Positions 4,720-36,723 of a stretch of DNA of 44,738 nt are shown piece by piece (positions within the stretch are counted from its first letter, which is position 1; each line of letters begins with the position of its first letter). The notes under the pieces are model-generated. The model searched no databases. It saw nothing but the letters and a program-made list of their open reading frames with translations, and was not told the DNA's origin. A program made the translations under genes and the position numbers. The DNA is from Ministeria vibrans ATCC 50519 (taxonomy: Eukaryota; Protista; Filasterea), in contig CALSCP010001415.1 of NCBI GenBank assembly GCA_943704425.1, positions 1 to 44,738 of the forward strand. The letters run 5' to 3'.

Positions 4720-4751
<32 letters not shown>

Positions 4752-5213
4752 GAAGATGGTGGTGGTGTGATTGCACGTCAGCGACGAGTGGAGAGCGCAG
4801 CCGCACTTGTCGAAGTGCGTGATGCCGTCCTGTGGATCAAGCAAGATCTGGAGGATGCAGCGGAGGAGCGCGAAGACTCAACCGAGACGGACGAGACGAC
4901 CGCGCGATTGTTGCTGACGTTCACGGCGAACCACGACGTTTGGCTTGCCATGCCAACGGTGCTCGCGTTGGTGCGTGCCTGCGGCTACGAGCGCAGCGAA
5001 GATGTCGACCTGGTGCGCTGGCGTCTGCCTGCATCACTCTCGACGGATGCGCTGCGTGCTACGGTTATATTGATTGATCGAGGGTTGCAACGACAGGTGG
5101 AGCGCAAGCCTGCACCGGCGAGGAAGACGAAGAAGGCGGCGAAGGCCAAGGTGACCGCACCGGTTGTAAGAGTGAAAGAAACCACGAAGGAGGATGTGGA
5201 GGAGAAGAAGGCG

Positions 5214-5247
<34 letters not shown>

Positions 5248-6410
5248 GACGAGAGCTGGAGCAGGATGAAGTGGAGGGCGAGGATGCGGAGGCACGAAAG
5301 AAACGACTGCAAGAGGAGTTGGAGCGACAAGAGATCGAAGCGGAACTGGCCATGCTCGCGGATATGGACGTTCTTGGAGAAGGTCCTGACGAATTGAGTG
5401 ACGCCGACGACACAGAACCGACGACGGCGATTGGTGGGGCGGACGAAACGCCCAAGAGCAGCAGGTCCAAGAAGACTTCAAGGGGTGGAGATGACGCGGT
5501 GGATACGGAACGTCTTAAGGCTCGCAAACGACGTGACGGACTCGCCAAATTGCTGAAGAACAAGCGCGACCAGAAGAAGCGCGCGATCAAGTCGTTCATT
5601 GAGACGTCTGTCAAGTCGAGTGGACGCAAGAAGGAGTTGCGTCGAGCGCGACTGGAGGACGCTGTGGGCGACGGGGAGGATGGGAACGAGGAAGGAGTGG
5701 GCGGGGCCTCAGCCAAGAAGAGACGAAAAACCGTGGAGGAGAATGGCGCGATCAACGACGGCGTTGGTAATGATGACGATGGGGAGCGCAAAGGAGAGGA
5801 GGAGGAGGAGGAGGAGGAGGAGGGAGATGAGGAGGAGGATGACGAAGAGCAAGTGGTGCGGAAAAAATCGAAGCGACGGATGGTGGTAGACGATGACGAT
5901 GAAGACGAAGACGAGACCGTGCGAGCGCCAGCCAAGAAGAAGACGAAGAAGACAACCGCGACGAATGCGGCGGGCAGCGACGAGCGGAGCAAGAAGAAAA
6001 AGTCGGGCGATGATCAGCGCAAGAAGAAGCGACAGGCGCCGGCGAACGAACGGTGGACCAAGGCGGAAGATTTGCTACTGCTCGAGCTGTATGACGAGCA
6101 GATGAAGGAAGCGCTACCAAGTGCTACGAGCATTGCGCAGGACCTTTATAAGAAGTCGCCGGACGAGGTTGCGCAACGACTGCGCGAGTTTGGACTGGAA
6201 GTTTGTCACGTTTCGCATGGGACAGACACTGCGGCAAAAGCGGCAGAAAACCAGGAGATGACGAAGGAAGCAGAGACCGAAGCGCGAGAGATGTCGAAAG
6301 AAGCGGAGACGGAAGCGACTACGAATGAAGCAGAGACAGCAACTGAGACACTAGAGAACGCCATGGCAGAAGAGACTCCTGTCAGTTCAATGGAGACAGA
6401 GACAATGTAA
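255..6410 (+). CDS. TIMELESS: Timeless/Tof1 replication-fork protection protein (multi-exon)
   Basis: Exons 255-384, 567-614, 737-831, 888-987 and onward splice in frame to ALGAF...DCLKDLMICLRRDD...QLGLWHVLQQDLLPIL...LIATLTLP. Later motifs are SRHSRF, YLWSMRFFME, NRCVLKMLHRVA and FVELLFWK, Myb-like repeats, and a PAB-like segment (LWIKQDLEDAAEERE...WRLPASLS). A long terminal exon ends at TAA 6410. Confidence 0.93.
505..550. repeat. (CT)n microsatellite in Timeless intron 1
   Basis: Visible dinucleotide run. Confidence 0.95.
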
Positions 6411-6442
6411 ACATAAAGTTTTAAACTCATTACCCCCCCCCT

Positions 6443-6444
<2 letters not shown>

Positions 6445-6476
<32 letters not shown>
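6445..6476. repeat. Poly-T homopolymer
   Basis: 32 T residues between the Timeless stop and the MAGUK fragment. Confidence 0.95.
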
Positions 6477-6477
<1 letters not shown>

Positions 6478-6618
6478 TGGCTCATTTCTCAACTTTGCGT
6501 GAAACTTCGGGGGTGTTTCCCGACTGGTTCATTGTGCACTGTGTGCGTGTACATTGCTTGGCTTCTTGGAGTGTTTGATTTCTTAATAGAGCAATTTACC
6601 TTTCTTGTATTTTCATAG

Positions 6619-6768
6619 GGAAGCAAAGAGCGTCTTGAGCTGACCAAGATTGCGCAAATCTTCCGTCATCCCACCTACGGAGCGGTCGGTGGAGTCATTG
6701 AGGCGACTGGTAAGCTTTGGCCGGGTGATATCTCGCACGTTTTGAAAGGTGAACTCATTTGTTTTGTC

Positions 6769-6802
<34 letters not shown>

Positions 6803-7711
6803 GGGACACAGGCGAGAAACTGGAGCCCAAGGAGGTGCCTGCTGCTGCCAGCGTGGCTCCTGCAACGGCTACTGCAACGGCTACTGCAACAACCCCCACA
6901 GAGACAACCGATGTTGCTACTACTGCTGCTGCTGCTGCTGCTGCAGGAAGCGCGTCGACACTGATTCCGACTGGCGATCAGGCGCCGGCAAAAGCATCGA
7001 CGCTGGAGAATGTGCGATCGGTGACGCTTGTGAAGGGGTCGACGGGACTCGGTTTTAACATTGTTGGTGGTGCGGACCAGTCGACGGGGATCTTTGTGTC
7101 GCGCATTTTGGTTGGGGGAGTGGTAGACAAGAATGGACAGATCCGCAAGGGCGACCAGGTGCTTGCAGTGGACTCGACGCCACTGCACGCAAGAATGACG
7201 CACACAGACGCAGTCAATGTGCTCAAGGGCACCAAGGGCGAAGTGACGCTGGTGGTCGCCTCCAACGCAGTCGAGTACACGCGCTTTGAAGGGATCATTG
7301 AAGCGGCGAGCCAACGTCGCGCCTCCAAGGGCTCGATCAAGGCCAGTGCGCGCTCCTTCATTGTTCGCACTCTATTTGACTTTGATCCCAAGGAGGCCTC
7401 CGACATGCCTGGCCCGGGAATGAAGTAAGCACGTTGTAGAGGAGTGAGTCTGTGAGTTTGTATGAGTGAATGTCCTTCACACACACACATATATATAAAC
7501 AAGCACGCACTCACACATTCCGTTAGGTTCTGCAAGGGAGACGTGTTCCTTGTGACCAACGCAGACGACACAGAGTGGTGGCAGGCCAAGAAGATCGATG
7601 CAGGTGCAAGCAATCCGTCAACGACCTGTCGCACAGTCGTCATTCCGTCCAGTGGCTGGCAGGAACGAAAGGAATTGCGCAAGGCAAAGAAGGTATTTAT
7701 ACAACAACTTT

Positions 7712-7743
<32 letters not shown>

Positions 7744-17000: not shown

Positions 17001-20000
17001 ATGCTCTCCCTCCTACTGGTACTCCCTGCCTTGGCCTTGGCGTCGGCCCTGCAGGCGGGGACGCACAGAGAGAGAAGAGTTCACATGTTTGAACCAGACG
17101 AAGTGTACACGTACGCCTTCCACGGACAGGTACGCCACCCCCCGCCATGTGCATCCTGCCTCTCCCTTGCCCCTCTCCCGTCCGATTTCCTTCGATATCT
17201 GTCGCAAATTTAAAAAAAAGAAAAAAAAGAAGGAGGAAAAAAAGAAATCTTTCAAGAAAATCTAAATCTAAAGTGGTTCCGAATAGACCACATTGGCGAC
17301 GGGCTCAGCGTCCGCGACGCATTCTGGCATGGACGTGCGGTGTGTAGTCGACTGTCAGGCGGCGAGCGCGTCGGACGACCGCCTTGTCGTCCATTTTCAC
17401 GCGCGCAATGTGACGGTGCTCGAGTGGGACGGCCAAACCGCAGCCTTCCTGCCTTCGTCGATGTCGCCCTTTTACGACGCCTCCCTCAGCCGCCACCCCT
17501 TTTCAGCGGCCTTCGACCACGCCGGGAACATCTCCAGCGTCTGGCTGGCGCCCGAAGACGACGTTTGGGTGGCCAACCTCAAGCGCTCCTTTCTGTCAGC
17601 ACTGCACGTTCATCTGCTCGACGGCGATCTCTTCACATCGATGCACGCCGACCTCACCGGGACGTGCCGCGCGAGGCACTCGGTACGTCGTCGTGACGGA
17701 CAGGATGCCCTTGAGATCTCGCGTGTACGCGACCACTCCGATTGCGAATCGCGTGCGCTCCATCACAACATGCAGCACCCTTCGCACTTGACGCGCGTGC
17801 AACAAGACCTCTCGTCCAGTACCGACTCGCTCCACGTCCTCAACACCACGACACGTCTCGTGATGTCCGCCTCGCACTCCGAGTCGCATATTTACACGGG
17901 TCTCGGCGCCTCGCGCGTGTCTCATGCTGCATCACGCACGTCCCTCTCGCTCATGAGTAGCTCTTCTTCGCAGCACCGCCCCGTCATCAGCGTCCAACGT
18001 GAACACCTTGTGCTCACCACGCTTGCCTACGAGCACCCGGCCAAGTCGCTCGACGCAGCGTCAAGCGACGACGCCGAACACCTCGCCGCTGTGCGTCTCT
18101 CCATCCTTGCGCTCGTCCACAGCAACGCCTCGTCGCTCACCCCCGCCATCGAGTTGCTCCAACAGCACCCGGTCGTTCTCTCGTTGCTCGTCGACGACCT
18201 GCACAACCGCACGGCGCGCGGTCGTCTTGTAGACGTCATCACCGCCGTTGGCTCCAGTGACTCTCACCAGTTTGTGTGCAAGTATGTCCTCGACAACGTC
18301 CACATGCCTGTCGACGTGCGTCTGCGTGTTCTCATGAACACCGCCTACCTGCCACACCCGAGTCCCGCCATGTTCCGCGATGTTGCCCGCCTTGCCAGTG
18401 CCGCCACGGGCGCCGATACTCTCGCCGACAACGCCTTGCTTGCCTTCGCCTCCATGGTCTACGCCCAGCGCCAGGCCAACCCGGACCTCATGAAGCAGCC
18501 ACTGGCACCTCTCACCCGCGCCATCCTTGAACCAGTCGCTCGCACCCTCAAAGATTCCGCGTCCATCTCGCTCAACCGCAACCTCGAGCAACTTTACATA
18601 TCGACGCTCGGCAATGCGGGTCTCGTCGACTACATCGACTCGCTCCTCGCCGTCATCCTGCGCCCCACTATCCCATCTCCCGCCCTGCTCCATACCATGA
18701 GCGGCCATCAGGACGCACGCGTCTCCGCCATTCGCGCCCTGCGCCACATGCGTCCATTGCCCTCTATCGCCCGCAGTGCTCTCATCGTCATCTACTTTGG
18801 TCCGCACCTCAATGACAACAACAACGACATGAAGAAGGCGCAGGCTCAGCCGGACTCCGATGCCGTGCGCATCGCTGCCTTTCGTGCCCTCATGGACTCC
18901 AACGAGGACCTCTACTCGTCCGAAGTGACGCGTCTCGTGCAGTCGCTTGCTCATGAGTCCTCCGTCGAAGTAGGCTCCTACGTCCTCTCCCACTTCAAGT
19001 CGCTCGCCGCAAGTGCCACCGACGCCTCCCTTGCTCGCCACGTCCGCGGCATTCTCTCCGACATGCTCTCCTTCTCCGCATCTGTTTCCCTCTACGGCAT
19101 CGAACTTAACCTGGGCTTCTCCAAGTCCAAAGAGTGGCTTTTCCTGGGTAACACGGAGTTTGGCGCGTCCATTGGCTTCGACCTCGTCAACGAGGCGGCC
19201 GTCTTCATTCCCCGCAGCGGTCATGTGCGCTTCGACGCCGAAATCCGCAACGTCGGCTACCTTCGTGCCTACGCCTTCAAGAAACTGTACAACCTCGTCG
19301 AGGTGGGCTTCACCGTTGAGGGTCTCGAGTTTGAATTTGGCGGCATTGGCAATGGCGCGCGTCGTCGCGACGCCCACGACGGCAATGACATCACCGACAG
19401 CGAAGAGGACAACGTCGAACACCCCGCAGACGACGTCGAAGACGATCTTCTCTCCCTTGCAGACGACCCAAATGCCGTGCCTTACCACATCCACGAGCAG
19501 GCGGGTCACATTGAGTTTTACTCGCTCGAAGCGTACGCCGCCTTTGACAACGACACTCCCACCGATCAGGAAAAGGACCGCCAGACGCGCTGTACCCCGT
19601 CAGCGTCGGCCACATACGCGTGGGTCACCGCCCCGTGGGGCTGTTGCTCCAAAAAGTGCATGCCAGGCGGCAAGCAGACTCGCTCAGTCAAGTGCGCCTC
19701 GTACGTCGGCACCACCGTTGAGTGTGCCAATGTCGCCGCCGTCAAGTGCGCCGCCGTCGCCATGCCTGCTTCCGAGCGCACCTGCAACACCAATTTGCCC
19801 TGTCCGGTTGCCGGAAGCGTCGGCGAAATGGCCTGGTCCATGGCACCCACCTGTGAGACGTACAAGGGCACGCTCGGCCTCAGCAAGCAACTGCTCGAAG
19901 AGCTCAGCTGTATGCATCCGGGCAAACTCAAGAATGCCCTTGAAATTCCCGAAATCTGTGCCACATCAGGCGCCTTCCCGTGGGTCCAGGACAAGACCTT

Positions 20001-23000
20001 TGACGAACTGAAGGCGTCCGTCGAGGGCCAGACCAAATTCTACCAGATCAACTCGGCCATTCGCTCCATTGCGCAGCAGTACGTCCTCTACAAGTACCGT
20101 ATCTTTACCAAGGGCACCAACGGCACCTGCTACAAGTGTCGCCAGTCCAACATTGTCGGGACGCCTGGCAACAGTAACCACCAGAGTGGCGGTGCCATTG
20201 ATTTTGCTCAAAACTCGCGAGAGCGCTTCAAGACGGTCATGAACAGCAAATGGTCGCGCTACTCGGATCGTCATCCGGGCAGGGACAAACCCCACTACGA
20301 CCGTTGGCCCACAAGCGACCTTGTCTCGTTCAAGGCCGACTCCATTCGTGCATTCCAGCGTCTTCACAATCGCAACTGCGCCCCTCAGCCCAGCTGCAAG
20401 ATTGCCGAGACGGGCGTGTGGGTGTGGGATGGTGAACTCGATCGGGCTCTCTTTGATGCGCCTCGCAACGGTTACTCCGGCGGTGCCTCTTGCTCGACAC
20501 CACTGCCAGGCGCCAACGAACCCCCAAGCTGCTGCAGCAAAGACCTCAAGAAGAAGGGTCGCTGCATTGCGTCCTCCACCTGCAAGAACAACGGGGGCGC
20601 AACGCTGTCGGGCCTCTGTCCTGGTATCTCCAAGTGTTGCGTTGACGAGCCCGTCGATGGTGTCGAGGTTACCATTAGCAGCAAGAAGGAAGGCTCGGAA
20701 GATCTGTTCCCGGTGCCCACCGTCATGACCGAGCAGCAGGCCGCTCAGTCGCAAGAGACCGAGGACAAGACCGTGTCGGTGCCCGTCCCCAAAGATCTCT
20801 CTCCGACCAACCTTGACTCGCTTCGCAACATCGGCTCCTTCCTTCGTCCCAACCGCATTCGCATTCGCCTCACCAAGAAACCGACGGCAGCAGTGACTCT
20901 TACGCTGACGCTCTCGTGCTGCGAGCCCGACGGCCTTGGCAGCTGCAATCAAGTCACCAACAACAACGTTTATGGCTTTTTCGATGCGGGCGCCGCCACC
21001 ATCTACCCGTCGCAGCTTAATTTTGCTGCCAACTCGGACACCTACAAGGTCTATCAGTCGGTGGGCGTTTCCAACAACAGCCCGCAACCGCAGTTCTGCT
21101 CCGTTTCCATTCAAAACTATTCCCCAGCCGGTCCCTACGCCGGCTACCACATCACTTTTGATCTCACCCTGCCCGCCCTCAGTGTATGTCGCGCCTACAA
21201 CGAACAGGAAGTGGACTCCACGTCGGGCGGCGGCACTGGCCGTCGTCGTGGTGCCAGCACCGACGAGCAGGATCCCATTACCGTCGAGGTCAACGAGCAA
21301 GACGCGGTGCACGACGAGTCGCATCACGAACGCCACCAGCACACCCAGAGCCGTCGCAGCATTGATGGCGACGATGCGTCGCTCTCGTGCAACTGTCCCG
21401 AGGCCGCTCCCGAAGAGTGCCAGTCGGGCCTGTGTGCCGTCAACAGCGCCTTCTGTTCCTTCATCAATAGCCAGGAGCGTGCCACGAGCAACATGGACGG
21501 CACCGACGACAAGACGTGCGCTGTTCCCTCCGGCTCGACCGGCGCCCCCTCGTGCAACGTCTTTGGCAGCATGCCCTGGCTGTCGGACGGTCAGCAATTC
21601 AACTTGGCCGCAACGTGTCACGCATTGCTGCGCAGCGACGCCGACGAGAACCTGTTCAAGTGCGTGCAGAACAATCTGATTTCGGGGCTGCAGGCCGTCG
21701 ATTCGTCGTACCAGTCGGCTTACGCGGCTCTCAAGGGCACCGTGGTGCCCGGCAATGCTTTTTCGGCCGACGAGTACCACCGCAAGCTAGTGAACGGCGG
21801 CGGTGGTTTGCCGTCGCCGTCGCAGGCCGAAACTGTCTTCTCCATCTACAAGACGGCTTACGAGACGTGCTGTTGCGCCGAGACGCCTGGCCAGTACCTT
21901 GCCTGGATCGCATCGACGCCCGTCAAGATGGAGCCGGCCACAGTCAACTACAATCACCAGCTGTACGGCACATGCGAGAACCGTGCCACCGTGAGCGGCG
22001 ACAAACCCGGCATCACCGGCTATTTCTTCATCAATCTGCTTGGACAAGAGTGGAAGCGTTGGTATGTCTTTGGACAGGACCCCAACGATACGGGCGACCG
22101 TCGTCGTCGTCGTCAGCAGGTCATGAGCGAGTTTGACGAGCGCGGCGAGGCACTCGTCGCTTCGTTGCCGTCGAATCACCCAGCGCGTCTCGACCATCGC
22201 GCGCGTCGTGGCTTCATCAAGGACAACCTTGCGGATCTCATTGCCAACCTGGATCCGGCTCAGTACTGTTTGAGCTACCCTGCCATCAAGATTATGGACC
22301 TGTCGGTGCCTTTCTTTCCCCCGTACGTTCAGTATGTGCCTCTCATTCTGGGTGTTGCCCTGGAAATTCGCATTAGTGCCGGAGCCTACTTCCGCATCTA
22401 TGCCAATGCCGAGGTGTGTCCATTGGCGCTGTCCGCAGGCGGCTCTATTGGTCCCGACCTGGGTGCCGAGCTTGTGGGCTCCGTCGCGCTCAACGCCTTT
22501 GTAATTCGCGCGGGTATTACATTGAGCATCGAGTTGCTGCAGAACTCGCTGCGTTTCAGCGCGGACCTCGCGTTCGCCTCGAAACCCTTCCAGGTGTGCT
22601 TTGATTTGACGCGCGAGCAAAATCCCCTCACCTTCAAGTTCGAAGCGTTTGTTCAGTTGCGCACCAAAATCAAGTGGTGCAAGGTCTGGGGCGTGCCCAT
22701 TCCTTGTGGTCTCACCTGGGGCAAGCGCCATGCCATCACTCTTGGCTCAGGCTCACTCTCCTCCAATCATGTTATTGACGTCATGTGGACCAACTGCAAG
22801 GCGGACGTGAACACGCGACCCGTCGCGACTCCCGCCCAACTGACCGTTGGCGAAGACGTGCTGTACACGGGTACACTGGCTGGTACTGACTCGGACGGTG
22901 ACAGCCTCACCTTTGCCATTCACACCGAAGCGGACGGACTCGTGGTGCTTACCGACGAAACAAGCGGAACCTTCACGTACCGCAGTGCCAAGCACCGTGC

Positions 23001-26000
23001 GGGCACGGACACGTTTGGGTTCACGGCGAACGACGGCGAGGAAGAGAGCGAACCCGCCTTCATTACCATTACTGTCACTCCCATTTCAGACCCACCTGCC
23101 GTCACCGTCGAGCCCATGACCGGCACCCAGGGATCGTCGGTCAACCTCGACATTGAGGTGGAACTTGTTGACATTGACGGCTCCGAACAACTCTCGGTGG
23201 CCCTGTGTGACTGCTCGGCGTCGCTCGACGGCAGCGCCTGCTCCTCCACCGGCGCTTGCTGCCTCGAGATTCCCACGCGTCGTCTCGACTACCCTTCGGC
23301 CGGCATATCCTCATTGCTCAGTGGCGGCACATCACTCGTGCCCAAAAGCCTTCTGAAGACCACGAGTGGCTCGGGTTCTGGCTCGTCGCTGTTTCACTCG
23401 CGCGAGCGAGCCACTGGACCTGCCTCGCGTATTCATTGTGAAGCGCGCGGCAGTCAGGGCGAGTGTCAGAAACGCGCAGTGGCGCTCGGCGCCACCTTCC
23501 GCTCGTTTGCCGCCGGTCAGACGTGCGCCCAAGTGTCTTGCTCGCTGAGCACGCCCGGAACGCTTGGCGCCTGCTGCCTTAACAATGGGTTTAGTGGCAC
23601 TTGTCACGCACAGGCGAGTGCGGCCGACTGCCAGACGCGCGCCACGCTTCTTGGCTGGACCTTTGGCTCGTTCAATCCGTCAGCGACGTGCAGCGACAGC
23701 GCCAATGTGTGTCCCTCCATCATGACCGCCGGTGGCACGTGCTGCCTCCAGCAGGGCACCACGGCCATGTGCGAGCACCACATCTCCGAGAGTGTGTGTC
23801 GTGACCGTGCCACTCGCTCCGACAATGTCGTCTTTCGCTCGTTCACCTCGGGCCTCAACTGCCCCACCACTAGCTGTCCTGTGCTTATCACGCCGTGTCT
23901 CACGTCACCCTGCCGCAACGGCGCCACATGCACCGAAACGTCGACGACCACGTACACGTGTACCTGTGTGCCCGGCTTCCAGGGTACCGACTGTGAGCAG
24001 GACGTTGACGAGTGCGCATCGCAGCCGTGTGCCAATGGTGCCGTGTGTATTGATGGCGTCGACAACTTTGCGTGTCGCTGTGTGGCTGCTAATGGATTTG
24101 GCGGTGAGCTTTGCGACGCGCCCATTGACGAGTGTCTGTCATCGCCGTGCGAGAATGGTGGCACCTGTGTTGACAAGGTTGCTTCCTATGAGTGCACCTG
24201 CCTCGCGACCTTCACCGGCGACTCGTGTCAGACTGACTACAATGCGTGTACGTTGGTGCCGTGCAAAAATGGCGCCGCCTGCGCCTCCGATCCAATCACT
24301 GGCTTTGTGTGCACCTGCGCCACCGGCTGGCTTGGCACCACATGTGAGCAGCCCGTCGACTATTGTGAGTCGTCGCCGTGTGTCAATGGGGGTGTGTGCT
24401 CGCTCAACACCGCCTCTGCGACACCCTTTGCACAGTGTACCTGTAGCGCCGGCTACAATGGCGATGCGTGCGAGACAAACATTGACGAGTGTGCCGCTGC
24501 CCCCTGCCAAAATGGAGGCACGTGCCGTGACGGCGTTGCCTCGTTTGTGTGCGACTGTGTGCCTGGCTACCAGGGCACCGTGTGCGCCACAAACATTGAC
24601 GATTGTTCGCCGAATCCATGCTCGGTCAATGGCGTTTGCCACGACCTGGTTAACGGCTACCGTTGCGACTGTACCCCTGGCTACACGGATCCGCTCTGCG
24701 CGACCAACACGGACGAGTGTGCTACGTCGCCTTGCCAGAATGGCGGTGTGTGTGTCGACGGCGTGAACGAGTACGCCTGCTCGTGTGCCTACGGCTGGAT
24801 TGGCGTCAACTGTGACACGCTCGAGGATGAATGCATCTCGTCGCCCTGCCTCAACGGTGGTCAGTGTGTCAACGCCGACAACAAGTATGAGTGTCGTTGT
24901 GCGACCGGCTATGCGGGTGTTCAGTGCGCAACGGACATTGACGAGTGCGCCTCGATGCCGTGCCTTAATGGGGCCGCCTGCGTGAACGGCGTGGGTGGCT
25001 TTGCATGCACCTGCCTGCCCGGCTACCATGGAACGACGTGTGCCACGAACACGGACGAGTGCGCGATCGCACCATGCAAGAATGGCGCCGCCTGTGTCGA
25101 CGGCGTGAACATGTTCACGTGCACATGCGTCGCCGGCTACACCGGTCAGGTGTGCGATGTCAACATCGACGAGTGTGCCGCGGTCACCTGTCAGAATGGT
25201 GGTACGTGTCAGGATGGCGTCAACGACTTCACCTGTGTGTGCGAGCCGGGCTATGCGGGCGATCTATGCGACGTGAACATTGACGAGTGTGCCTCGACTC
25301 CTTGCATCAATGGAGGCGTGTGCATCGACGGTGTCGATGCCTTCTCGTGTACCTGTGTTGTCGGTTATGCAGGCGCACAGTGCGAGAGCAACATCAACGA
25401 GTGTGCTTCGACGCCGTGCGTCAATGGCATGTGCGTTGACGCGATAAATGCCTTTTCGTGCACCTGTGATGCCGGCTATGCTGGCACCTTGTGCGACACT
25501 GACATTGACGAGTGTACTACCACCGGGAATGGGTCGCCGTGCCTCAATGGAGGTGTGTGTAGCGACCTGGTGAACGGTTACAAGTGCACGTGTGCCGCCG
25601 GCTATGCGGGAGCGACGTGTGCCGAGAACATTGACGAGTGTGCCGCCAACCCGTGTTTGAATGGTGGCGTGTGCACCGACGGTATTAACCTGTACACGTG
25701 TCAGTGTGCCGTTGGCTATGAGGGCTCTGACTGCGACACCAACACGGACGATTGTGCGGCTGACCCCTGCCTCAATGGGGCCACGTGTGTCGATCGTCTC
25801 AATGCCTTTACGTGCAGCTGTGCCGCCGGCTACCGCGGTACACTTTGTGCCGAAAACATCGACGAGTGCGCACCCATCGCGTGTCAGAACGGTGGCACGT
25901 GTGTAGACGGTGTTGACCAGTTTCAGTGTGTCTGTGCGAACGGCTGGCACGGTGTGCTGTGCGAGACGGACACCGACGAGTGTGCCAGCAGTCCATGCCC

Positions 26001-29000
26001 GCGTGGCGAGTGCATCGCCGCTGTTGGTGCCTTTAGCTGTCGCTGTCCCACCGGCTATGGCGGCACCCTGTGCGAGACGGACATTAACGAGTGCGAGACG
26101 AACCCCTGCCTCCACGGAGGCTCGTGTACCGACACAGTGGGCGCGGCCGTGTGTACCTGTGTTGAGGGCTATGGCGGCGACACGTGCGCCAACAACATTG
26201 ATGACTGCGCTCAGAATCCTTGCGTGCATGGCACATGCTTTGACCGTGTTAACGCCTTTGAGTGCGTTTGTACCGCCGGCTACGAGGGTGCCACTTGCTC
26301 AGTGGACACCAACGAGTGCGCGAGCAGTCCATGCGACAACACTGGCGTCTGCAGCGACAAAGTCAACGGCTATGTGTGCGCGTGCCCTGCGGGCTTTGCC
26401 GGCACACACTGTTCACAAAACATTGATGACTGTGTTCCAAATCCCTGTCAGAACTCGGGCGTGTGTGCCGATGGTGCGAACGCTTTTACATGTACTTGCG
26501 CCGCCGGCTATGAGGGCGACACGTGCGCCGACAACATCAACGATTGTGCGACGCAGCCTTGCAAGAATGGCGCCGTCTGTCACGATGGTCTTCTCACCTT
26601 CACGTGTACCTGTGCTGCCGGCTACACCGGCGACATTTGCAACGTTAACATTGACGATTGCGCCGCGGACCCCTGCCAGCACGGCGGTACCTGTGTCGAC
26701 GCTGTGAACGGTTTCACGTGTACCTGTGTCGCCGGCTATGCCGGTGCTACATGCTCCCACGATGTCGATGAGTGTGCGGCGCAGCCGTGCCTCTCTGGCG
26801 GCACCTGTGTTGACGAAATCAACGGCTACTCGTGCACGTGCGCGACGGGTTACGCGGGTGCCACGTGCGCCGAGAACATTGACGACTGTGCGCAGCATGG
26901 TTGTGCCAACGGCGCCACGTGCGTGGACCATGTGAATCGCTACTCATGCAACTGCAAGCCGGGCTATGCGGGCACACTGTGCGAGATCAACGTGAGCGAC
27001 TGTTCGCCGTCACCCTGTGTCAATGGTGGCGTGTGCAAAGACGGCGTCAACTCGTACGTGTGCATTTGCCCTGTAGGCTACGCGGGCGCAACGTGCGCGA
27101 CGAATGTGAATGAGTGTGCGAGCAGCCCGTGCCACAATGGCGGTGTCTGTGTCGACGAGGTGGGCGCGTATGGCTGCATTTGCGCCGACGGCTATGGCGG
27201 CAACATGTGCCAAGTGAACATTGACGAGTGCGCCTCGGAGCCGTGCCTCAATGGTGCCACCTGTGTGGATGCGGTGGACGGGTTCACATGCAAATGTGCC
27301 GCGGGCTTCGCCGGCGATATGTGTGCGGGCAACATTGACGAGTGCGCGTCGACACCCTGCCAAAATGGAGGTGTGTGCACTGATCTTGTTAATGCCTTTT
27401 CATGCGCCTGTGCCAGTGGCTTCACCGACACAACGTGCAGCACGAACATTGATGACTGTAAGGCCGAATCGTGCCACAACGGTGGTACATGCGTTGATTT
27501 GGTTGACGCAGTGCGATGCACGTGTGCGGCTGGCTGGCAGGGCATCGCCTGCAACGAGCAGGTCCTTGAATGTGAGTCAAACCCGTGCGTCAATGGCGCG
27601 TGCGTAGACGCCACCAATGGCTACATTTGTAAGTGTGAGACTGGCTGGGCGGGAGTCGCGTGCGACTTTAACATCGACGACTGTGCTGGTTCACCGTGTC
27701 TCAACGGCGGTGTCTGTTCCGACGCCGTCAACGCCTTCACGTGTGCGTGTCCGGCTGGCTTTGCTGGCGCGACTTGCGGCACCAACATTGACGAGTGTGC
27801 TCCGGCGCCCTGTCTTAATGGGGGTCTTTGTGCCGACGCGATCAATGGTTTCAAGTGTACGTGCGCCACGGGCTTCTCGGGCACCACGTGCTCGGTTAAC
27901 AACGACGATTGCTCTCCGCAGCCGTGCAAGAATGGCGCGACCTGCACCGACCTGGTCAACAGTTACCGTTGTACCTGTGTGCCGGGCTACGCGGGCACTC
28001 TGTGCGACACGAACATTAACGACTGTTCGCCCAACCCATGTGCCAATGGGGCCTCCTGCGTCGACCAAGTCAACGCCTACAAGTGCCTGTGCCCCCCCGG
28101 ATTTGTAGGTACCACCTGTGCTACCAATGTGGACGATTGCGCCGGCAACCCCTGTGGCTCGTACGGCTCCTGCTCCGACGGTGTCAATGGCTTCACGTGC
28201 ACATGCGAAACCGGCTTTAGCGGGACCACCTGTCAGACGAACAACAACGACTGTGTCCACCATGGTTGCAGCAACGGCGCCACCTGCGTCGACGGGGTGA
28301 ACACATACACCTGCTCATGCACCACCGGCTACTCGGGGACCTACTGCCAGACCAACTCCAACGATTGCTTTAGCGGCGCCTGCCTCCACGGCGGCACGTG
28401 TGTCGACGGTCTAAACACCTACACTTGTAAATGTCTTGCGGGCTACTCGGGTTCGCGTTGCGCCACCAACGACAACGATTGCTCCCCAAACCCATGCGCC
28501 AACGGCGGTGCCTGCCAGGACGGCGTCAACTCGTACACATGCAGCTGTGCGACCGGCTGGACGGGAACTCAGTGTACGGTAGCCGTCAACTACTGCCAGT
28601 GCTCCCCGTGCCGAAATGGCGCCACCTGCACTTCACACTCGTCGGGCTACACTTGCGCGTGCGCACCCGGCTACTCCGGCTCGTCTTGCACGGTGAACAC
28701 CAACGAGTGCGCATCTGCGCCCTGCCAAAACCTCGGCACCTGTGTCGACGGTATCAATGGCTACACCTGCACCTGTCTCACGGGCTTTACTGGCTCGACG
28801 TGCGGCACTAATATCAACGACTGCGCTTGCAACCCGTGCCAGAATGGTGGCACATGCACGGACTTGATTAATGGCTTTACGTGCTCGTGTGCCACGGGAT
28901 ACGCCGGCTCGACCTGCTCCTTTGACATCAACGAGTGCGCTTGCAATCCGTGTCTTAACGGCGGCGCTTGTGTCAATAATGTGGGCTACTACACGTGTAC

Positions 29001-32000
29001 GTGTGCGTCGGGCTATACTGGCTCTCAGTGCGGCGAGACAATTGTCAATTCGTGTGCTTCAAGTCCGTGCAAAAACGGAGCCGGGTGCGTGCCAATCTCG
29101 CCGAGCGCTTACAAGTGTATCTGCGTCTCGCCCTATACGGGCACCACCTGCACTGAAGTAAATCGTCCGTGTTGCACACGATCGTCAGCTGGCGTCGGAG
29201 CCTGCTCGCTCCATACGAGTGCGTCGGCCTGCTTCTCGTATGCATCCTCAGCCAGTCGCACTTACGTCTCCTATTACTCGTCCTCCACCAGTTGCAGCTC
29301 TGTCATTTGTTCCGATGTATCCTCCACCAAATACGTTTGTTGCAACAGTGGTCAGCTGCGTCGCGACGCGCTCATTGTGCCCATTGAAGACGGCGCATGT
29401 ACACTGGAGACTGCTCAAGACTGTGTTGGCATTTCGATTCTCGGTGAGACCCGGTGCCTCTCCGACTCCTGCACACGTATACTTCAGCGTCGCGCCATCT
29501 CGTCCATTCCTGCCAAGACATTCCTCTCGTCGGGTGTTCTTGCGCCTCCCACATCATCTGCGACCTCCGTTTGCGGCTGCAACGGTCAAGTGCAGTTTCC
29601 CAGTGACGAGTGGAAGATTACCAAGAGTGGTGTGAAGCTGACGGATTCGGCGATGCAGTCGTTGTCGCTTGCCGACCTTGCTTCGCTTGAGGTGGTTCCC
29701 GACCCGGATTTTTCGGGCAAATTTGCCTTCCAGGTGGTAGGTCTGTCGCAGGAAAAGGAAGCGGGTATTCCCGCGGCCATTTCCAACGTGCCTGCCGGCA
29801 TGAACATCCTGCCAGTGAACGAAGCGCCTACCGTGAGTGCCACGCTCAGCTCGGTCAGCGTGGCCCTCGGTGACTTTGTCGCCTTGGGCTCGTTTACCGT
29901 GGCCGACTCGGACCTGGGCGGTGACGGCCTGCTTGTTGTCAACGTCGAGGCGTCCTTTGGTGACGCTCACCTGTGGGTTTCGACCTCGACAGGCGTCACC
30001 TTCCTGGGTGTGCCACCGGCCGACGTTGAAGAGCGCGGTGTGAGCGCCTATGTGGAGGAGACAGCGGATGCGTCGATCGAGAATGTCTACGTGACGTTGC
30101 GTGACGCTCTCTCTGTGGGCGTTGTCAACGGCAACAGCCGACTGCGCATGATGGGTACGCCCATTGCACTCAATGCGGCACTCTCGTCGCTTCAGTACGA
30201 GTCGGGCGCGGCTTTTGTAGGCGCCGACACGGTCACCCTGAGCGTGTCGGACCTGTTTGCGGCGGATCTTTTTGAAGTGGAAAGTGTCGGACTGTCCGCG
30301 TCCACCACCATTGCTGTCACTGTCACGGGTTCCCTTCCTGTGGGCCACATTGTGACGTCGGGCGAACAATCTGAATTCCAAGTGTCGTCGAGCGGTGCCG
30401 ACGATTCGTTGCAGAACCTCTTTGCGCTCTCGGTGCTGACCGAGACCAGTGACACCGAAGTTGAGCTTGAGTTCAGCTTCACAGACGCGCCCGATGCACT
30501 GACTGCCCCCACTGCCGCGACCGTGAGCAGCGCAAACTTGGGCACCTACGTAGTCGTATCACAGTCACCGACCAAATACCGCGTGCGTGGTACTGCCTCG
30601 TCCATTCTCTACATGCTCTCATTGTCGACGGTCGACGCGAGCAAGTCGACGACACACTGTCGCTGGCGCATGCTTGCGAAGCTCTACGTGAGCCCGACGG
30701 GTGCGCTCCTCGACACGCACGCCCTGTGGTACACCAAGAGTGGCTGTACGCCCACGGCGACGCTCACCATGGCACCGACACAGACGGTGCTGGCAACCAC
30801 CAGCGAGGGCACAGGCGTCACCATCACCAGTGCCAACTGGCAGCTGACGAGCACGGGCGCCAAGGTGCTGGTGTCGCTCGAGTCGGACGATGTCCACGTG
30901 ATATTTAGCAGTGTCGCATCGGGCGTGACCGTGTTCACCGCCAAGAGCTCGCAGGATCACTCGCTTATTGGCGGCACCACTAGTCTGCAGTTGTTGGGCT
31001 CGGCGGCTGCCGTCAGCAGCACACTCAACGCCATTGAGGTGCAGCCTCAGCTGCGTTTCAGCGGTATTGCCTCGATTCACGTGCGTGCTGTGGCGCTTGG
31101 TGCTCATGAAGAGCCCGTGGAGATGGTGAGTATGGATGCGGTGGCGCTGGTCATGTCCTCCCTTGTGGCCACCAATCTGATTGAGGTGACGGTGACCGAC
31201 GTGAACCACGAGCCGTCGTTGCTCTATCCATCGTACATGACGGTGAGCGAGCACGAATCGAACGAGGTGCACTCGTTTGGTGTGTTCGACGACGATCTTC
31301 TTGCCGTGGGCGGTTCGCTCGTTGTCCTTGTCGAAGTGACCGCGGGAACCTTGTCGCTGGCGGACCCCGCCATCGTGCAGATGATTCAGGGCACCGGCAC
31401 TGGCGATGCTGTCATGTCGTTTACGGGCTCTCTGCAGGCTGTGAATACAGCGCTATTTTCGCTCGTGTACAATGCTGGTGCGTGCGCCGAGGTGTCCTGT
31501 GGCGCCACCGACGAGTTCTTGCACATTCAAGTGACCGACTTGCCGTCGACGCCCAACCAAGCGTCGACGTCCATTGACGGCGTGACGCGTCTTGACATTT
31601 TGTGTGTGGCCAACGCGCCGCTTGTGACTGCCCCTGCAGCACTTGGGTGGGAGGACACCGACGTTGCCGTGTCGGTGTCGGTGACCGCTGTAGACACCAA
31701 GGAGCTTGTGTACGTGCACATGCGACTGCCCGAGCACGCGTCGTTGACCAATGGCGCCGACTTGGGCTACGACGGACTGTGGGAGCTGCAACTCAACGAG
31801 CTTGCGGGTCTCAAGGTACGACCTCTGCCCAACTACAATGGCCTCATCAATATTACTGTGATTGGCATTTCGATTGAGCCGTCGGTTGACGAGCGCGCCA
31901 CGACGGAGCGCACGCTCATTGTCGATGTGCGCGCCGTCAACGATGCGCCCACCATCAAAGTGCCGCCTTCGCCGCGTGTCTTTGAGGACACCTTGTCGCT

Positions 32001-35000
32001 CTTGAAGCCCATTGTGGTGCACGACGTGGACCACCAGTGGGGCGAGGGCGGCTCGTACACGGTTGTGGTGGGCATCACGCAGAATGGCAAGCTCAGTGTG
32101 AGCCAGACGCGTCTGCCGACGCTGCCTACGGGCGTCACGGTGACCAACGACGACTCAGCCTGCGTGCAGGTGTCGGGTCCACTTGAGGGTGTGAACACGG
32201 TCCTGAAGAACCTGATGTTCTTGGGCACAACCAATTTCAACGGACAAACTGTCCTGTCGGTGCTGGTTGACGACCAGGGCAGCTATGGTGTCATGTCGAC
32301 CACAACGGCTCCCACCACGACCACGGGGTTCAAGCCGCTGGTGTCGCCGCTGGCGCGTCGCCGTCGTCGTTCACTCTCCTCCTTTAGCGGCATCTTCAAG
32401 GACCTCAACAACATCAACAACATCAACGTCCATCGCCGCGGCCTCACCACCATCAATCCCAACTGTCCCCTGCCGGCAGGTGTCACGGGTCTCACTGCGT
32501 CCGCCTCAACCAACATTCACGTGCTGCCGGTGAACGACGAGCCCGTTATTCATCTTGCGGCCACCGCTTTGTGTTTCCAGTGCACGCCGGTTATCGACAG
32601 CTTTGCGCCGGCTGAGGAGCTTCTCACGGCTCTCTCAGGTTTGTCCGTGTCCGACGTGGACACGGTCGCGGCCACGGTGACACTCAGTGTACAAAATGGC
32701 TCGCTCTTCTTTGGCAACGACGTCGCGACGGTCGCCGATGTGCTTGACGAAGTGCCCATCACAACAGGCGAGTTTTTTGATCGTCCTGCTGGACTCACTG
32801 AGCTCGAGAGCTCGCAATTCCTGACGCGTCGACGACGACGCACCACCACCAGCAGTGGCAGTGGTGGTGGCGGCGGCGGCGGTAGTTCGATTTTGGCGCC
32901 ACAGTTGTTGCGGCGACGATCGCAGGAGGAGGTGCAAGAGAAGTTGGCCGAAGATTTGTCGGTGGACGAGCTGGATCTTGTTTCGGAGATCGCGGCGGAG
33001 ACGAAGAAGCAGAACCGAGTGACGCGTTTCTTTACGCGTCGTCGTCGTCGCACGGTACAACCGGCGGTGAGTGCGGTTAAGGTGACCTTTGAGTATGGCA
33101 GCAACAACACCCAAGTGATGCGCTTTGTGGGACCCATTTCGAGAATCAACACGATGATGGCGGGCCTCATGTACCGCGGCGTGGAAGATTTCAATGGCGA
33201 TGGTGAGCTCGTGGTGAGTGTGCAGGACTCGCCTGTGGACGGCACACCTTCCGAGTTTACGTCGCGCACCTTTGCCTTTGCCGTCACGCCCGTCAACGAT
33301 GCACCCAATGTGGCGTCGTTTGCTGCGCGATCGCGCATTCGCGTGGGTGGCTCGTCGACTGTGTCGTTTGCCGCCTTTGACGATGGCTCCGAGCTGGGCG
33401 ACGAGAACACCGACGTGGAAGCGGTGCTCACGACGGCGCACGGCACGCTTGCGTTGCCAGCCAGTGCATCGTCGGCGGCGGGTGTGACTGTGTCGGCGAC
33501 GACGGGCGCTGCGATTACGCTGCGTGGCCGCGCGAACGTAGTGAACGAACTCATGACGGGCATGACGTTCACGGCGGACGCGTCGATGGTAGGCACGTCG
33601 TTGAGCACCAGCGAGTGTGTGGTCTTTGCCTCCATTGATGACAATGGCAACCACGGTGCGGGCGGCCCCATGTCGGCCGACGCCAACGTGACCATGGTCG
33701 TGCTGGGCTGTGCGGGCACCGTGACGCGACGCAACCTCAAGGGGTTTAACACGGCGTGGCGCTACGAAAAGATCCCGTCGGCGCAGGTGGTGCAGGAAAC
33801 GCTGACGTCGCGCACGACGAGCATTCGCTTCTTTCCCTCCGAAGATGTGGCACCTTCGAAGATTCTGCGCACACTGCAGACAACCACCGGAGGCTTTGGG
33901 AAGCTGGGCGCTCGCGAGTGTCCCGAGAACACGCAGGCGTACCTCAACACGAACACGGAGGGCGATCTGTCGCTGCGCAGCACCTTCTATGTACCCGAAG
34001 AGACGCTGTCAGTGTACGTGCGCGTAGTGACGGATGGCGAGGCGGCCGTGTACCTGAGCGACGAGTTTCTCTTTACGCATGTGTGGGACGGCTCGGGCTG
34101 TACGACCGAGACAATCTTTGAGGTGCCTTTCTGGGAGTTTGGCGCGAATGCAATTGCGGTGCGCGTGTACAACCACACGTACATTGATGTGGCAGTTGAA
34201 GCGGATGTGTGTGGTGCAGTGCGCCCCCCCTCGGGCTGTACCGACGACCGCGACTGCTGGCCCGGTGCCAAGTGTGTCGGCTCGCCCGGCCAGTGCAAGG
34301 TGAGCGTGTGTGGCGATGGAATTGTTGACTTTGACGAGTTCTGCGACGATGGCAACCGCATTGACGACGATGACTGCGACAACGAGTGTGGTGTGTCACG
34401 TCTGACGTGCAAGCCGCACAAAGTGACCGCGTCAGATCTGACGGATGCGGCGGATCTGGCGGCGCTTGCGGCGGGCACCGGCAACGGCTTCATCAATGGC
34501 TTTGACCGGGACGGCCTGCAGTGCACGGGCTCGTGCAATGGCGGCAGTGGCATGGGCTGCTACGCACAGTGGAGCAACGCCGGCAAGACATTGCAGACGT
34601 GCTTGTGCACGGACGGTGCGCAGGTGCAGGCGCCCGGCTGTGCCGTGCGCATCAACAAGCTGCGTGCAGGCAGCAATGGCGAGACGGACGGGTATGATTC
34701 GGCGGGTCGCTACTGCGGCGGCACGTGTTCGGTGACGGGCGCGAGCTGCGAGGGCAAGTGGGCAGACAGCGGCACGACACTTGTGTCGTGTGGCTGCAAG
34801 ACACCCGTGCAAAGTGGCTGTCGTCTGGACAATCGCAACAACATGTGTGTGGGGCAGTGTACGGTTACGGGTGCGACGTGTCGCGCCGTGACCCGTATCA
34901 ATGGCCGTGTGACCGGCTGCACGTGTGCGCCAGTGGTTGCTGGCGATTCGTGCAAGCTAGAGCATCGTCCCAATGTGTTTAGTTTGCGTCGTCTTGCGCT

Positions 35001-36723
35001 GCCCTTTGTACAGCTGGAGCCCTACTGCTCGGGCACGTGTCAGGCGACGGGTCGCTCGTGCACCCTCCAGACTGTATTCGGACGCAGTTCGTGTGCATGC
35101 AGCGGAGCGGTGCCGCCCGAGCCCACAGTGTGCACAGCGGATTATGTGCGCAACGAGTGCACGGGAACCTGTGTGGTGAATGGCGTGAAGCGCTCGTGCG
35201 TGGGCGACTATGTGAACCGCAAACTGCGAGGGTGTGGGTGTGGCACGTTTGACACGGAGTGTACGGTGTCGGGCGAGACCTGCTCGGGCACGTGCAATGG
35301 ACAGGCATGTGTGGCGACGACGACAACCAAGCCGGGCACTCTGTTCAGTCGACCGCGTACGGTGCTGACGGGTTGCCAGTGTGCGGCGGTGACGCCGTCG
35401 CCCACGGGCTGCGTGGCCAACTACTTTAAGCAGACGTGCACAGGCTCGGTGGGCACGCCACCGCGCAAGTGCGTTGGTCGCTACCTCGGCTTTCGTCTGG
35501 TGGGCTGCGAGGCAACGCCCGAGGTGATCACCTCATCAGGCTGCTATGTGCGCAACAAGATCTGCTATGGCGTGTGCTCGGCGACGGGCTCGCGCTGTTT
35601 CCCGAGCACCTACAACGGTGTCATGACCAAGTGTTCGTGCGCCGAAGTACCCGGTACCGACTGTGGCACGGGCGGATTTTTGCGACGCGGCAAGATGTGC
35701 ATTGCGCAGCCTAAGCCCCGTGAAGTCTTGGGGGTGCCTGAGCCATCGGTGATCACCATGGAGGAGACCGTGTTGGGCCTGGATGATTCACTCGAGGTGA
35801 GCATTCCACCGACACAGCTGACACGCGACCGATCCAACGGAGTCATGTATGTGATTGAGCGGGACCCACTGCCGACGTGTACCAGTCGTTTCCGGGGTGA
35901 CTGTGTTGAGGCGCCCGAGGAGCTCAGTGAGTTTATTGCGGACCCTCGATCGACGTCGACGACGCGCGCCGAGGATGAGCGTCCCGAGGACGTCGAGAGC
36001 ATCGAGCAGGTGTTTACCGTGACGGCGTTTGAGTCGCCGCGTCTGCGACATCAGACCGAAGCGCTTGAGTTGGCGTCGGTTGAGAATGAGGAAACGGACG
36101 ATGCGGAGCCGGTGCGCGTGCGAACGAACCATCTGATTGAGCCATTGGAGCTGAACGTGCCCATTCCGTCGACGGTTGACCCTGAGCGAGTGAATGTGCT
36201 CATGCTGGACCTGTCTGTGCCGACGCGGCCCAAGCGCCGCTCGTGGTTGCCCGTCTCGAGCTCGTGCAGTGCGGCGAAGCGCAAGCGAACGTTGTTTGGC
36301 CGACGTCGACTGCGGGTGAACACGTGTCACTTGACGCAGTTTGCGGTGGTGGTGGCGCAGTGTCCAAGCACGTGTCCGTCGTGCGTGTGCTCAGCTGGGG
36401 TGTGTGAGTGTCCAGCGTCGTCGTCGTCCGTGGCGGCCATTGGCGGTGGAGTGGGCGCTGCGCTGCTCATTGCACTGCTTGCGCTTGTCATTGTCATTGT
36501 GGTGGTGCGTCGTCGTCGCCAGTCGAGTCGCTCGGCGCTTCTGGGGTCGGCGCTGTCGCTGCGTCGCCACGACTCCGTGGTGAGCACCATATCGGAGGTG
36601 GTCGAGGAAGAGTATCAGGCGGTGGGCATGTCGGACAATAGCATGATGATTATGGACGAGTCGTCGACGCTCGCCTATGCTCCTTTGGGCACGGCTGCCC
36701 TTCGTTACTCTGAAGACATTTGA
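17001..36723 (+). CDS. Giant (~6521 aa) type I membrane protein: signal peptide, vitellogenin/LLTP-like module, TSP1, M15 Zn-peptidase, peptidoglycan-binding domain, bacterial-type Ig/cadherin-like repeats, 46 EGF repeats, Cys-rich repeats, GPS-like motif, single TM and short tail
   Basis: Exon 1 at 17001-17129 (MLSLLLVLPALALASA...FEPDEVYTYAF) splices in phase 0 to exon 2 at 17287-36723, which is an uninterrupted ORF. Domains were recognised from motifs detailed in the findings. Confidence 0.93.
23893..29157 (+). repeat. Tandem array of 46 Notch-type (mostly calcium-binding) EGF repeats
   Basis: Counted by hand; consensus NIDEC.S.PC.NGG.C.D.VN.F.C.C..GY.G..C, about 38 aa per unit. Confidence 0.95.

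Follow-up and report, generated by a model that had tools for sequence, protein, structure and literature searches.

A probable bacterium-derived LAS/M15 peptidoglycan peptidase in the ectodomain of a giant protist membrane protein

In this study, we revisited a stretch of 44,738 nucleotides from Ministeria vibrans ATCC 50519 (contig CALSCP010001415.1, positions 1 to 44,738; referred to here as the window), in which one uninterrupted open reading frame (ORF) of 6476 codons at 17293-36723 encodes most of a giant protein. Our interest was in amino acids (aa) 853-1070 of this frame. Judging from sequence comparisons and a structural model, this segment is probably a catalytically competent LAS/M15 peptidoglycan peptidase, which was derived from a bacterium and built into the ectodomain of a single-pass membrane protein. 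An initial annotation of the window had reported at this place an intact bacterial-type M15 zinc peptidase and a peptidoglycan-binding domain inside a eukaryotic receptor, and had likened the arrangement to the Hedgling proteins. All features of the window described below lie on the forward (+) strand.

Results

A family profile hidden Markov model (HMM), built from 231 bacterial relatives with the window sequence left out, finds a single match in the 6476-aa protein, at aa 853-1070, and delimits a domain of 218 aa (19849-20502) that consists of an N-terminal helical cap, a catalytic core and a C-terminal extension. With 127.3 bits (E 2.8e-41) over HMM positions 4-200 of 205, the match is, as a sequence comparison, far beyond chance. 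The initial annotation had placed the domain correctly, and the peptides it quoted are all found in the 17293-36723 frame where it had put them, namely INSAIRSIAQQY (20047-20082), PGNSNHQSGGAID (20164-20202), DKPHYD (20284-20301), IRAFQRLHNRN (20344-20376) and ALFDAPRNGY (20446-20475); only the domain start that it gave, 19850, misses the codon frame by one base, which is without consequence. Part of the catalytic core (aa 902-978, 19996-20226) is matched by positions 11-81 of the 132 positions of Pfam VanY (PF02557) with 27.2 bits against a gathering cut-off of 25 (E 3.6e-6), and in the whole-genome scan VanY scored 28.7 bits. The only NCBIfam match was to VanXY, below threshold.

The family itself was reached through P0001, one domain-size relative from a word-indexed protein search, which shares 31% identity with the window domain over 190 residues, including a stretch that follows the catalytic core. 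A profile made from the window domain and P0001 retrieved 1633 relatives from 1.84 billion representative proteins, 340 of them at E<=1e-30; the best 150 of the 1633 all span the whole profile of ~230 columns, and Pfam VanY was scored by 143 of these 150 best representatives plus P0001. When PDB sequences were searched with the family profile, LdcB (E 1.8e-8), Ply500 (E 4.4e-8) and LysB4 (E 5.5e-7) were found, and a single-sequence search of the same sequences gave LdcB/YodJ only, at E 1.3. The window copy keeps 35 of the 50 columns of >=85% conservation in the family, every catalytic one included (among the residues kept are R924, S961, N962, H963, G966, A968, D970, D998, H1001 and D1003). 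It also keeps the four family cysteines, C854, C873, C946 and C1067, all aligned to cysteines of the family model, of which C854 and C946 are among the most conserved columns of the family alignment. By its cap, its four cysteines and its tail, aa 853-1070 thus qualifies at the sequence level as a full-length member of one bacterial VanY subfamily.

All five M15 catalytic positions (R, H, D, D and H) appear intact by alignment. Arg924 (20062-20064), which is invariant in the 231 relatives, is aligned via the family profile with R50 of LysB4 and is the predicted counterpart of this oxyanion-stabilising residue. His963 (at 20179) and Asp970 (at 20200), aligned with LysB4 H80 and D87, are the first two predicted zinc ligands and lie in SNHQSGGAID (20173-20202), where S961-N-H963-Q-S-G966-G-A968-I-D970 corresponds to the SxHxxGxAxD motif as defined previously (PMC6354061). 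Asp998 and His1001 (at 20293), aligned with D129 and H132, are predicted to be the water-activating residue and the third zinc ligand and lie in DKPH (20284-20295), a DxxH motif that is conserved to 98-100% in the family and aligned to LysB4 D129/H132 and to KDYPHFE of Ply500. The LysB4 equivalences were counted along a PDB chain that carries a 20-residue tag, and the alignments of the family profile to LysB4 and to Ply500 pass through both motifs. H80, D87 and H132 are the zinc ligands of LysB4, the attacking water is bound by its D129, and the R50Q enzyme is inactive (PMC6354061). In the window domain, His963, Asp970 and His1001 would correspondingly hold one zinc ion, Asp998 would activate a zinc-bound water and Arg924 would stabilise the tetrahedral intermediate. 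The predicted cut is within the stem peptide of peptidoglycan, at one of its peptide bonds.

The initial annotation was therefore right about an intact set of M15/LAS zinc-peptidase motifs, with VanY above its cut-off and R/H/D/D/H aligned to LysB4. Its term D-Ala-D-Ala peptidase is however too specific, as the second motif is DxxH as in LysB4 and Ply500 and not ExxH as in LdcB, which has a Glu at position -3 from the last His (PMC4087270). Because of this DxxH motif and the lytic company of the bacterial relatives described below, the sequence comparison favours an L-Ala-D-Glu-type endopeptidase over a D-Ala-D-Ala carboxypeptidase.

An AlphaFold2 model of the domain, based on a 71-row alignment, has a predicted local distance difference test score (pLDDT) of 86.1 and a predicted template modelling score of 0.86. 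Of the predicted ligands, His963 is part of a helix in this model, and Asp970 and His1001 belong to strands, which places the zinc ligands on the same types of element as in LysB4, where H80 is in alpha4, D87 in beta2 and H132 in beta3 (PMC6354061). A Foldseek search with the domain model gave M15/LAS enzymes and Hedgehog N-domains only, with E values of at least 2e-3. The VIA-align 2 Z scores were 8.2 for VanXYg, 7.8 for VanX, 7.5 for LdcB, 7.3 for VanY, 6.5 for LysB4, 6.3 for Ply500 and 5.5-6.0 for the N-terminal domain of Sonic hedgehog (Shh-N). In an unbiased structural search of 48,161 PDB chains, ranks 1-13 were all taken by LAS enzymes (Z 8.2-4.7), followed by chains with Z<=2.8. Because of this clean rank separation and the agreement with the sequence data, we regard the assignment of the modelled domain to the LAS fold, also proposed in the initial annotation, as secure, though the single Z values are middling.

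The gene in which the domain resides is eukaryotic, with an intron, a signal peptide, and epidermal growth factor (EGF) and thrombospondin type 1 (TSP1) modules. As read from the sequence, exon 1 (17001-17129; 43 codons) begins with an ATG at 17001, encodes a typical signal peptide starting MLSLLLVLPALALASA... and is followed by a GT donor at 17130; the intron closes with an AG at 17285-17286, and the long frame then continues in phase from 17287. Exon 2 (17287-36723; ORF list and Pfam scan) encodes the giant ectodomain, a membrane helix and a short tail, and each exon was read and searched by itself. Upstream of the peptidase are a Vitellogenin_N domain of the large lipid-transfer protein type (aa 9-568, 17317-18996; Pfam PF01347, E 3.4e-34, and own-genome search) and, immediately 5' of the peptidase, a thrombospondin type 1 repeat (~aa 777-834, 19621-19794; Pfam TSP1_ADAMTS, 31.6 bits, E 2e-7). 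Further Pfam matches along the long frame are a weak one to MTP lipid-binding (aa 1727-1796) and ~46 EGF repeats. A hydropathy scan located a single transmembrane helix at aa 6380-6405 (36430-36507), followed by RRRR and a tail of ~70 aa; this identifies the giant protein as a type I membrane protein whose peptidase faces the exterior of the cell or a lumen, in agreement with the receptor-type location claimed initially.

The same cannot be said of the cadherin stalk of the initial annotation. The sole cadherin-like module is a bacterial-type Big_9/Cadherin_4/5 module (aa 1838-1929, 22804-23079; Pfam), which is not of the classical animal type, PF00028 being without a match in the giant protein. 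It is a second bacterial-style module within this protein. Runs of RRRRR at 22099, 32356, 32827 and 33037 and an RARR at aa 1636 could be convertase sites. Inspection of the sequence revealed no furin-like site in aa 700-1603, and the peptidase would therefore remain joined to the N-terminal lipid-transfer part if the RRRRR or RARR sites were cut.

The C-terminal extension of the domain (aa 1010-1070, 20320-20502) is a predicted helix-loop-helix, to which hhalign, an isolated model and a structural search were applied. The initial annotation had read a PG_binding_1 domain here, and Pfam PG_binding_1 (PF01471), searched in aa 1004-1136 and in a 315-aa stretch around the domain, was without a match even at E<=10. 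A relationship was nevertheless detected by hhalign between the family tail and 26 true PG_binding_1 domains, with a probability of 96.2% and E 2e-9 over 34 columns, covering PG_binding_1 positions 2-35 of 56 and hence only about half of that domain; 20 controls (one reversed and 19 column-shuffled targets) gave probabilities <=0.8%. These 26 targets were taken from the same bacterial proteins and all lie outside the primary family domain, and secondary matches of the family HMM within them reflect this one similarity in the opposite direction. P0001 carries a canonical PG_binding_1 at its aa 304-359, downstream of the shared AFQRLWNRN...EDG stretch. The isolated model of aa 1010-1070 (41-row alignment; pLDDT 85.7) consists of two helices and coil. 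With this model Foldseek found nothing, and among the 48,161 chains searched with VIA-align 2, 12 of the 17 best matches were peptidoglycan-binding domains, with Z of only 2.7-4.1. These matches, classed as peptidoglycan-binding by their entry titles and the known nature of the proteins, include SleC, SleB-N, SltB3, L,D-transpeptidases, AP3 endolysin and phiKZ gp144. Of the family tail motif AFQRLWNRN...EDG.YGP.T, the window copy has kept the AFQ.L.N.N part and has lost four near-invariant positions of the family (W1025H, D1040T, G1046D and T1049L), and it contains two small insertions, CAPQPSC and VWVW. In our reading, the tail would be a PG_binding_1-like remnant whose hallmark motif has decayed in this copy and which may or may not still bind; of the domain claimed initially, there remain the profile likeness and the structural matches of low Z, and not the Pfam match or the full motif.

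These observations bear on the question whether the domain is a weapon at all. It is possible, though in our opinion doubtful, that it is instead a sensor, which binds peptidoglycan fragments as part of a pattern-recognition or phagocytic receptor and in which catalysis is weak, absent or serves to terminate a signal. The peptidoglycan recognition proteins, which exist in receptor-type and catalytic forms, provide a parallel. Such a role would be consistent with the receptor-like layout with its membrane helix and short cytoplasmic tail, with the inserted loops that surround the cleft and the length of the branch in the tree, and with a domain that is tethered and not secreted, there being no furin-like site around it. 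However, all catalytic residues have been kept though about two thirds of all positions in the domain have changed, while pure binding modules that derive from enzymes usually lose their catalytic residues. In addition, the PG_binding_1-like tail, which would be the likeliest binder, is the part that has decayed.

In contigs of bacteria and archaea with one genome per species, 443 stretches were found to encode a relative of the domain, the best 80 of which comprise 70 from Myxococcota (mostly Polyangiales), 3 from cyanobacteria, 4 labelled delta-proteobacterium, 1 from Pseudomonadota and 2 labelled 'bacterium'. A further 405 relatives came from a profile-based scan of metagenome contigs, and identity to the window domain is <=39% for every relative found, genomic or metagenomic. 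The family is present in 17 of 101 sampled Myxococcota genomes, often in 2-4 copies, and in 5 of 101 Cyanobacteriota. Because they are often fused to amidase (Amidase_3), glucosaminidase, phage lysozyme, GH108, SLT and GH19 domains, and also to PG_binding_1, the bacterial relatives look, by their domain composition, like lytic enzymes. The concentration of the subfamily in Myxococcota and its frequent wall-lytic fusions suggest a predatory toolkit for lysis, for which no separate family name exists. Among phage families, the best match was phrog_2649, an endolysin family; tblastn against 50,697 phage records gave no match.

This company has to be considered when asking whether the peptidase might act on the organism's own matrix, or on the giant protein itself, and have no bacterial role, an explanation that we regard as improbable. 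The domain does lie among matrix-type modules (TSP1 and EGF) and its branch is long. Furthermore, a substrate from the same organism has been proposed for the zinc site of Sonic hedgehog, and it has been argued that LAS domains of animals act on matrix components (PMC6027127; PMC8052667). The window domain is, however, a full-length member of a bacterial subfamily of cell-wall hydrolases, down to the peptidoglycan-binding-like tail, and is nearer to VanX, VanY, LdcB and LysB4 than to the Hedgehog N-terminal domain (Hh-N). We also know of no eukaryotic substrate with D-amino-acid or gamma-linked peptides.

Only bacterial relatives could be detected, the genome (29.7 Mb in 2860 contigs) contains the domain once, and a paralogue is without a counterpart. 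The sequence data therefore make it likely that the domain was acquired from bacteria by horizontal transfer, as the initial annotation had proposed; the transfer would be either old or followed by fast evolution. No eukaryotic-looking relative was found among the best 150 of the 1633 relatives in the library of 1.84 billion proteins, in word searches, in the ESM Atlas, where the nearest clusters are bacterial or from phages, or in a close-relative scan of metagenome contigs, which found nothing. Likewise, a word-indexed search of proteins of 3.5-11 thousand residues gave no relative by either the M15 region or the lipid-transfer region. Two metagenomic candidates, P0133 and P0096, which are cysteine-rich or bear Somatomedin_B, were rejected as eukaryotic relatives as they lie on gene-dense, short, bacterial-looking contigs. 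P0133 (649-1827 of its 2-kb contig) is a family member fused to two Somatomedin_B domains, a module usual in eukaryotes. The paralogue, a vitellogenin-type gene on contig C2840 (9000-18999, nt 1382-7726), aligns to aa 54-700 and 1359-1985 with 26-35% identity, and nothing in it matches aa 700-1359, i.e. the TSP1, peptidase and cysteine modules; this cassette therefore looks like an insertion or replacement in a lipid-transfer gene backbone. As to the source, the present-day carriers of the family, from which alone this can be judged, suggest a myxobacterial one.

Vertical descent within eukaryotes, from an old LAS domain akin to the N-terminal domain of Hedgehog and Hedgling, a connection raised in the initial annotation, is very improbable. 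It could be argued for from the fold, which is common to the window domain and Hh-N, from the giant EGF-rich membrane protein, which recalls Hedgling, and from a codon usage that is fully host-like: the GC content at third codon positions (GC3) amounts to 0.714 in the peptidase segment and averages 0.723 in the ORF (standard deviation 0.038), and its synonymous codon log-likelihood is -0.967 against -0.993 (standard deviation 0.075). However, HH_signal (PF01085) gave no match in the domain at E<=10 and none genome-wide at E<=1, the latter being weak as the controls of the genome search were all prokaryotic. Of the three profiles named in the initial annotation, VanY thus matches whereas PG_binding_1 and HH_signal do not. 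The N- and C-terminal elements and the four cysteines are moreover common to one bacterial subfamily, Hh-N scores Z 5.5-6.0 as compared with 7.2-8.2 for VanX, VanXY, VanY and LdcB, and the domain is internal, so that the proposed relation to Hedgehog and Hedgling is not upheld; the lack of eukaryotic relatives in the searches above and of a counterpart in the paralogue also speaks against descent within eukaryotes.

That bacterial contamination or a chimeric assembly joined a bacterial segment to a eukaryotic gene, which the exclusively bacterial relatives and the fragmented assembly might bring to mind, can be rejected with near certainty on frame continuity and codon usage, as the domain starts 2.5 kb into an uninterrupted frame of 19.4 kb with in-frame flanks (Vitellogenin_N and TSP1 upstream, EGF repeats downstream), shares no more than 39% identity with any bacterial sequence, and deviates from the remainder of the ORF by less than one standard deviation in GC content, GC3 and synonymous codon usage. 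An endosymbiotic (plastid) origin was rejected as well, since no light-harvesting genes were matched in the genome and the domain sits in an ectodomain of the secretory pathway. The genome also encodes Integrin_beta at three loci (C749:7094-7843, C376:53094-53858 and C2390:41136-41972), which, with no match to light-harvesting genes or HH_signal, points to a non-photosynthetic relative of animals or of apusomonads.

Immediately 3' of the peptidase, a basic cysteine-rich module (aa 1080-1116, 20530-20640) was recognized from its sequence, CC-x9-C-x5-C-x11-C-x5-CC, for which there was no Pfam or PDB sequence match. Its cysteine spacing resembles that of the beta-defensins. The module recalls the cysteine repeats beside the M15 domains of rusticalin-like proteins. 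Given what is known of vitellogenins and beta-defensins, the vitellogenin-type domain and the basic cysteine module would both fit an antibacterial theme.

Discussion

Our data are best described by a bacterial domain that would have entered the genome by an old transfer, would since have become fully adapted to the codon usage of the host, and would have been built into an ectodomain beside a vitellogenin-type domain, a TSP1 repeat, a defensin-like module, an Ig/cadherin-like module and ~46 EGF repeats. Bacteria held at the cell surface or in a phagosome might then be attacked by the peptidase, either for feeding or for defence.

Several points weigh against this interpretation. The sharing of one zinc site by the three ligands is inferred from the alignment and from the order of the secondary structure elements. 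Two loop insertions by the active site, aa 934-956 and 971-997, have a pLDDT of only 58-76; these insertions, as well as the CxxxxxC insertion in the tail, could alter substrate access. Several residues conserved in the family have changed, including a conserved Trp of the GFRWLG region; for M15C enzymes, a conserved Trp close to the active site, which may or may not be the equivalent residue, is reported to be important (PMC10487532). For the bond specificity, one motif and its context are all that the endopeptidase assignment draws on. In a maximum-likelihood tree of 232 rows, the end branch of the window domain measures 2.94 substitutions per site, compared with a median of 0.3; such a very long branch could reflect functional change or relaxation, and the tree gives the window domain no supported sister, so that no donor can be named. 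Finally, weakly similar eukaryotic orthologues may lie beyond the best 150 of the 1633 relatives.

If the peptidase interpretation is extended to the neighbouring modules, one arrives at a 'catch and lyse' receptor, in which the lipid-transfer domain would grip bacterial envelope lipids and the wall would be breached by the myxobacterial-type endopeptidase together with the defensin-like module, with all three carried on a single EGF-rich stalk in the membrane of a phagotrophic protist. We put this forward tentatively, as a speculation that may well prove wrong. If true, it would be a receptor for phagocytosis or immunity that contains its own lytic chemistry, a class not described in animals or their unicellular relatives.

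Cell-wall hydrolases derived from bacteria have been taken up several times by eukaryotes and are a recurring route to antibacterial immunity and to feeding on bacteria. In the literature searched, we did not find this VanY subfamily described as a source for eukaryotes, nor a cell-wall peptidase within a giant lipid-transfer/EGF membrane protein. If confirmed, the present case would add a new source family, from a subfamily concentrated in predatory myxobacteria, and a new setting, with the enzyme fixed in a giant lipid-binding, EGF-rich membrane protein as opposed to a small secreted one. A catalytic centre that has stayed intact through very deep divergence would furthermore argue for continued use. 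If the host is a non-photosynthetic relative of animals or of apusomonads, the finding would also be relevant to the organisation of phagocytic recognition and killing in the time before animals. It has no direct bearing on the origins of Hedgehog, because the domain belongs to a different LAS branch.

Among the closest known proteins are the VanY-subfamily hydrolases of Myxococcota (Polyangia) and filamentous cyanobacteria, such as P0001 and P0002, the latter named 'peptidoglycan-binding protein' in a metagenome-assembled genome of a Coleofasciculaceae cyanobacterium. With these, the whole 218-aa domain aligns at 29-39% identity, and they share with it the N-terminal cap, the R...SxHxxGxAxD...DxxH core, the four cysteines and the AFQRLWNRN...EDG tail. 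The bacterial proteins are however secreted, have 200-1000 aa and often carry a full PG_binding_1 and a second lytic domain, whereas the window domain is internal to a membrane protein of 6.5 thousand residues and has two loop insertions and a decayed tail motif. The phage L-alanoyl-D-glutamate endopeptidases LysB4 (6akv) and Ply500 (2vo9) have the same fold (Z 6.5 and 6.3; root-mean-square deviation 3.2-3.4 Å over 116-117 residues) and the same five catalytic residues, with Asp and not Glu three residues before the last His. They differ in that identity is only 18-19%, they have neither the N-terminal cap nor a PG_binding_1-like tail, and their cell-wall-binding domains are separate ones.

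The M15 D,D- and L,D-peptidases VanX, VanXY, VanY and LdcB are the best structural matches (Z 7.2-8.2), with the same Pfam family and the same first motif. They trim stem peptides or dipeptides and do not lyse the wall. VanX, VanXY and VanY also use ExxH, and the ExxH of LdcB (PMC4087270) likewise contrasts with the DxxH of the window domain.

The Hedgehog N-domain and Hedgling have in common with the window domain the LAS fold and a zinc site, and in Hedgling the domain is likewise part of a large adhesion-type membrane protein (PMC6027127). According to Roelink, Hh-N is nearest to the bacterial Hh/DD-peptidases (PMC6027127), a group that has been called a calcium-binding M15A subgroup (PMC8052667). 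The peptidase motif of Hedgling is described by Roelink as incomplete (PMC6027127), whereas that of the window domain is complete. The Hedgling domain is N-terminal, while the window domain is internal, starting at aa 853 after Vitellogenin_N and TSP1. In Hedgling the N-terminal LAS domain is followed by classical cadherin repeats and then by EGF repeats and a membrane helix, of which the last two elements are present in the giant protein as well. With the window domain on a different LAS branch, we regard the parallel to Hedgling as an analogy of layout only.

Among eukaryotic proteins, a parallel is offered by rusticalin and the rusticalin-like proteins of ascidians, placozoans, corals and some fungi, in which a Ply500-like M15 domain of bacterial or phage origin stands by defensin-like cysteine repeats, and which have been interpreted as the result of horizontal transfer and as antibacterial (PMC6339383, PMC7379824). 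In the window, the M15 domain likewise has a cysteine-rich neighbour, a basic module of six to seven cysteines that may or may not be related to these repeats. The rusticalins are, however, small secreted proteins with N-terminal cysteine repeats and an M15 domain of another Pfam family (PF13539/PF08291). As the M15 acquisitions of rusticalins have already been described, the uptake of such a domain by a eukaryote is a known kind of event; it is the setting within a giant membrane protein that is unusual here.

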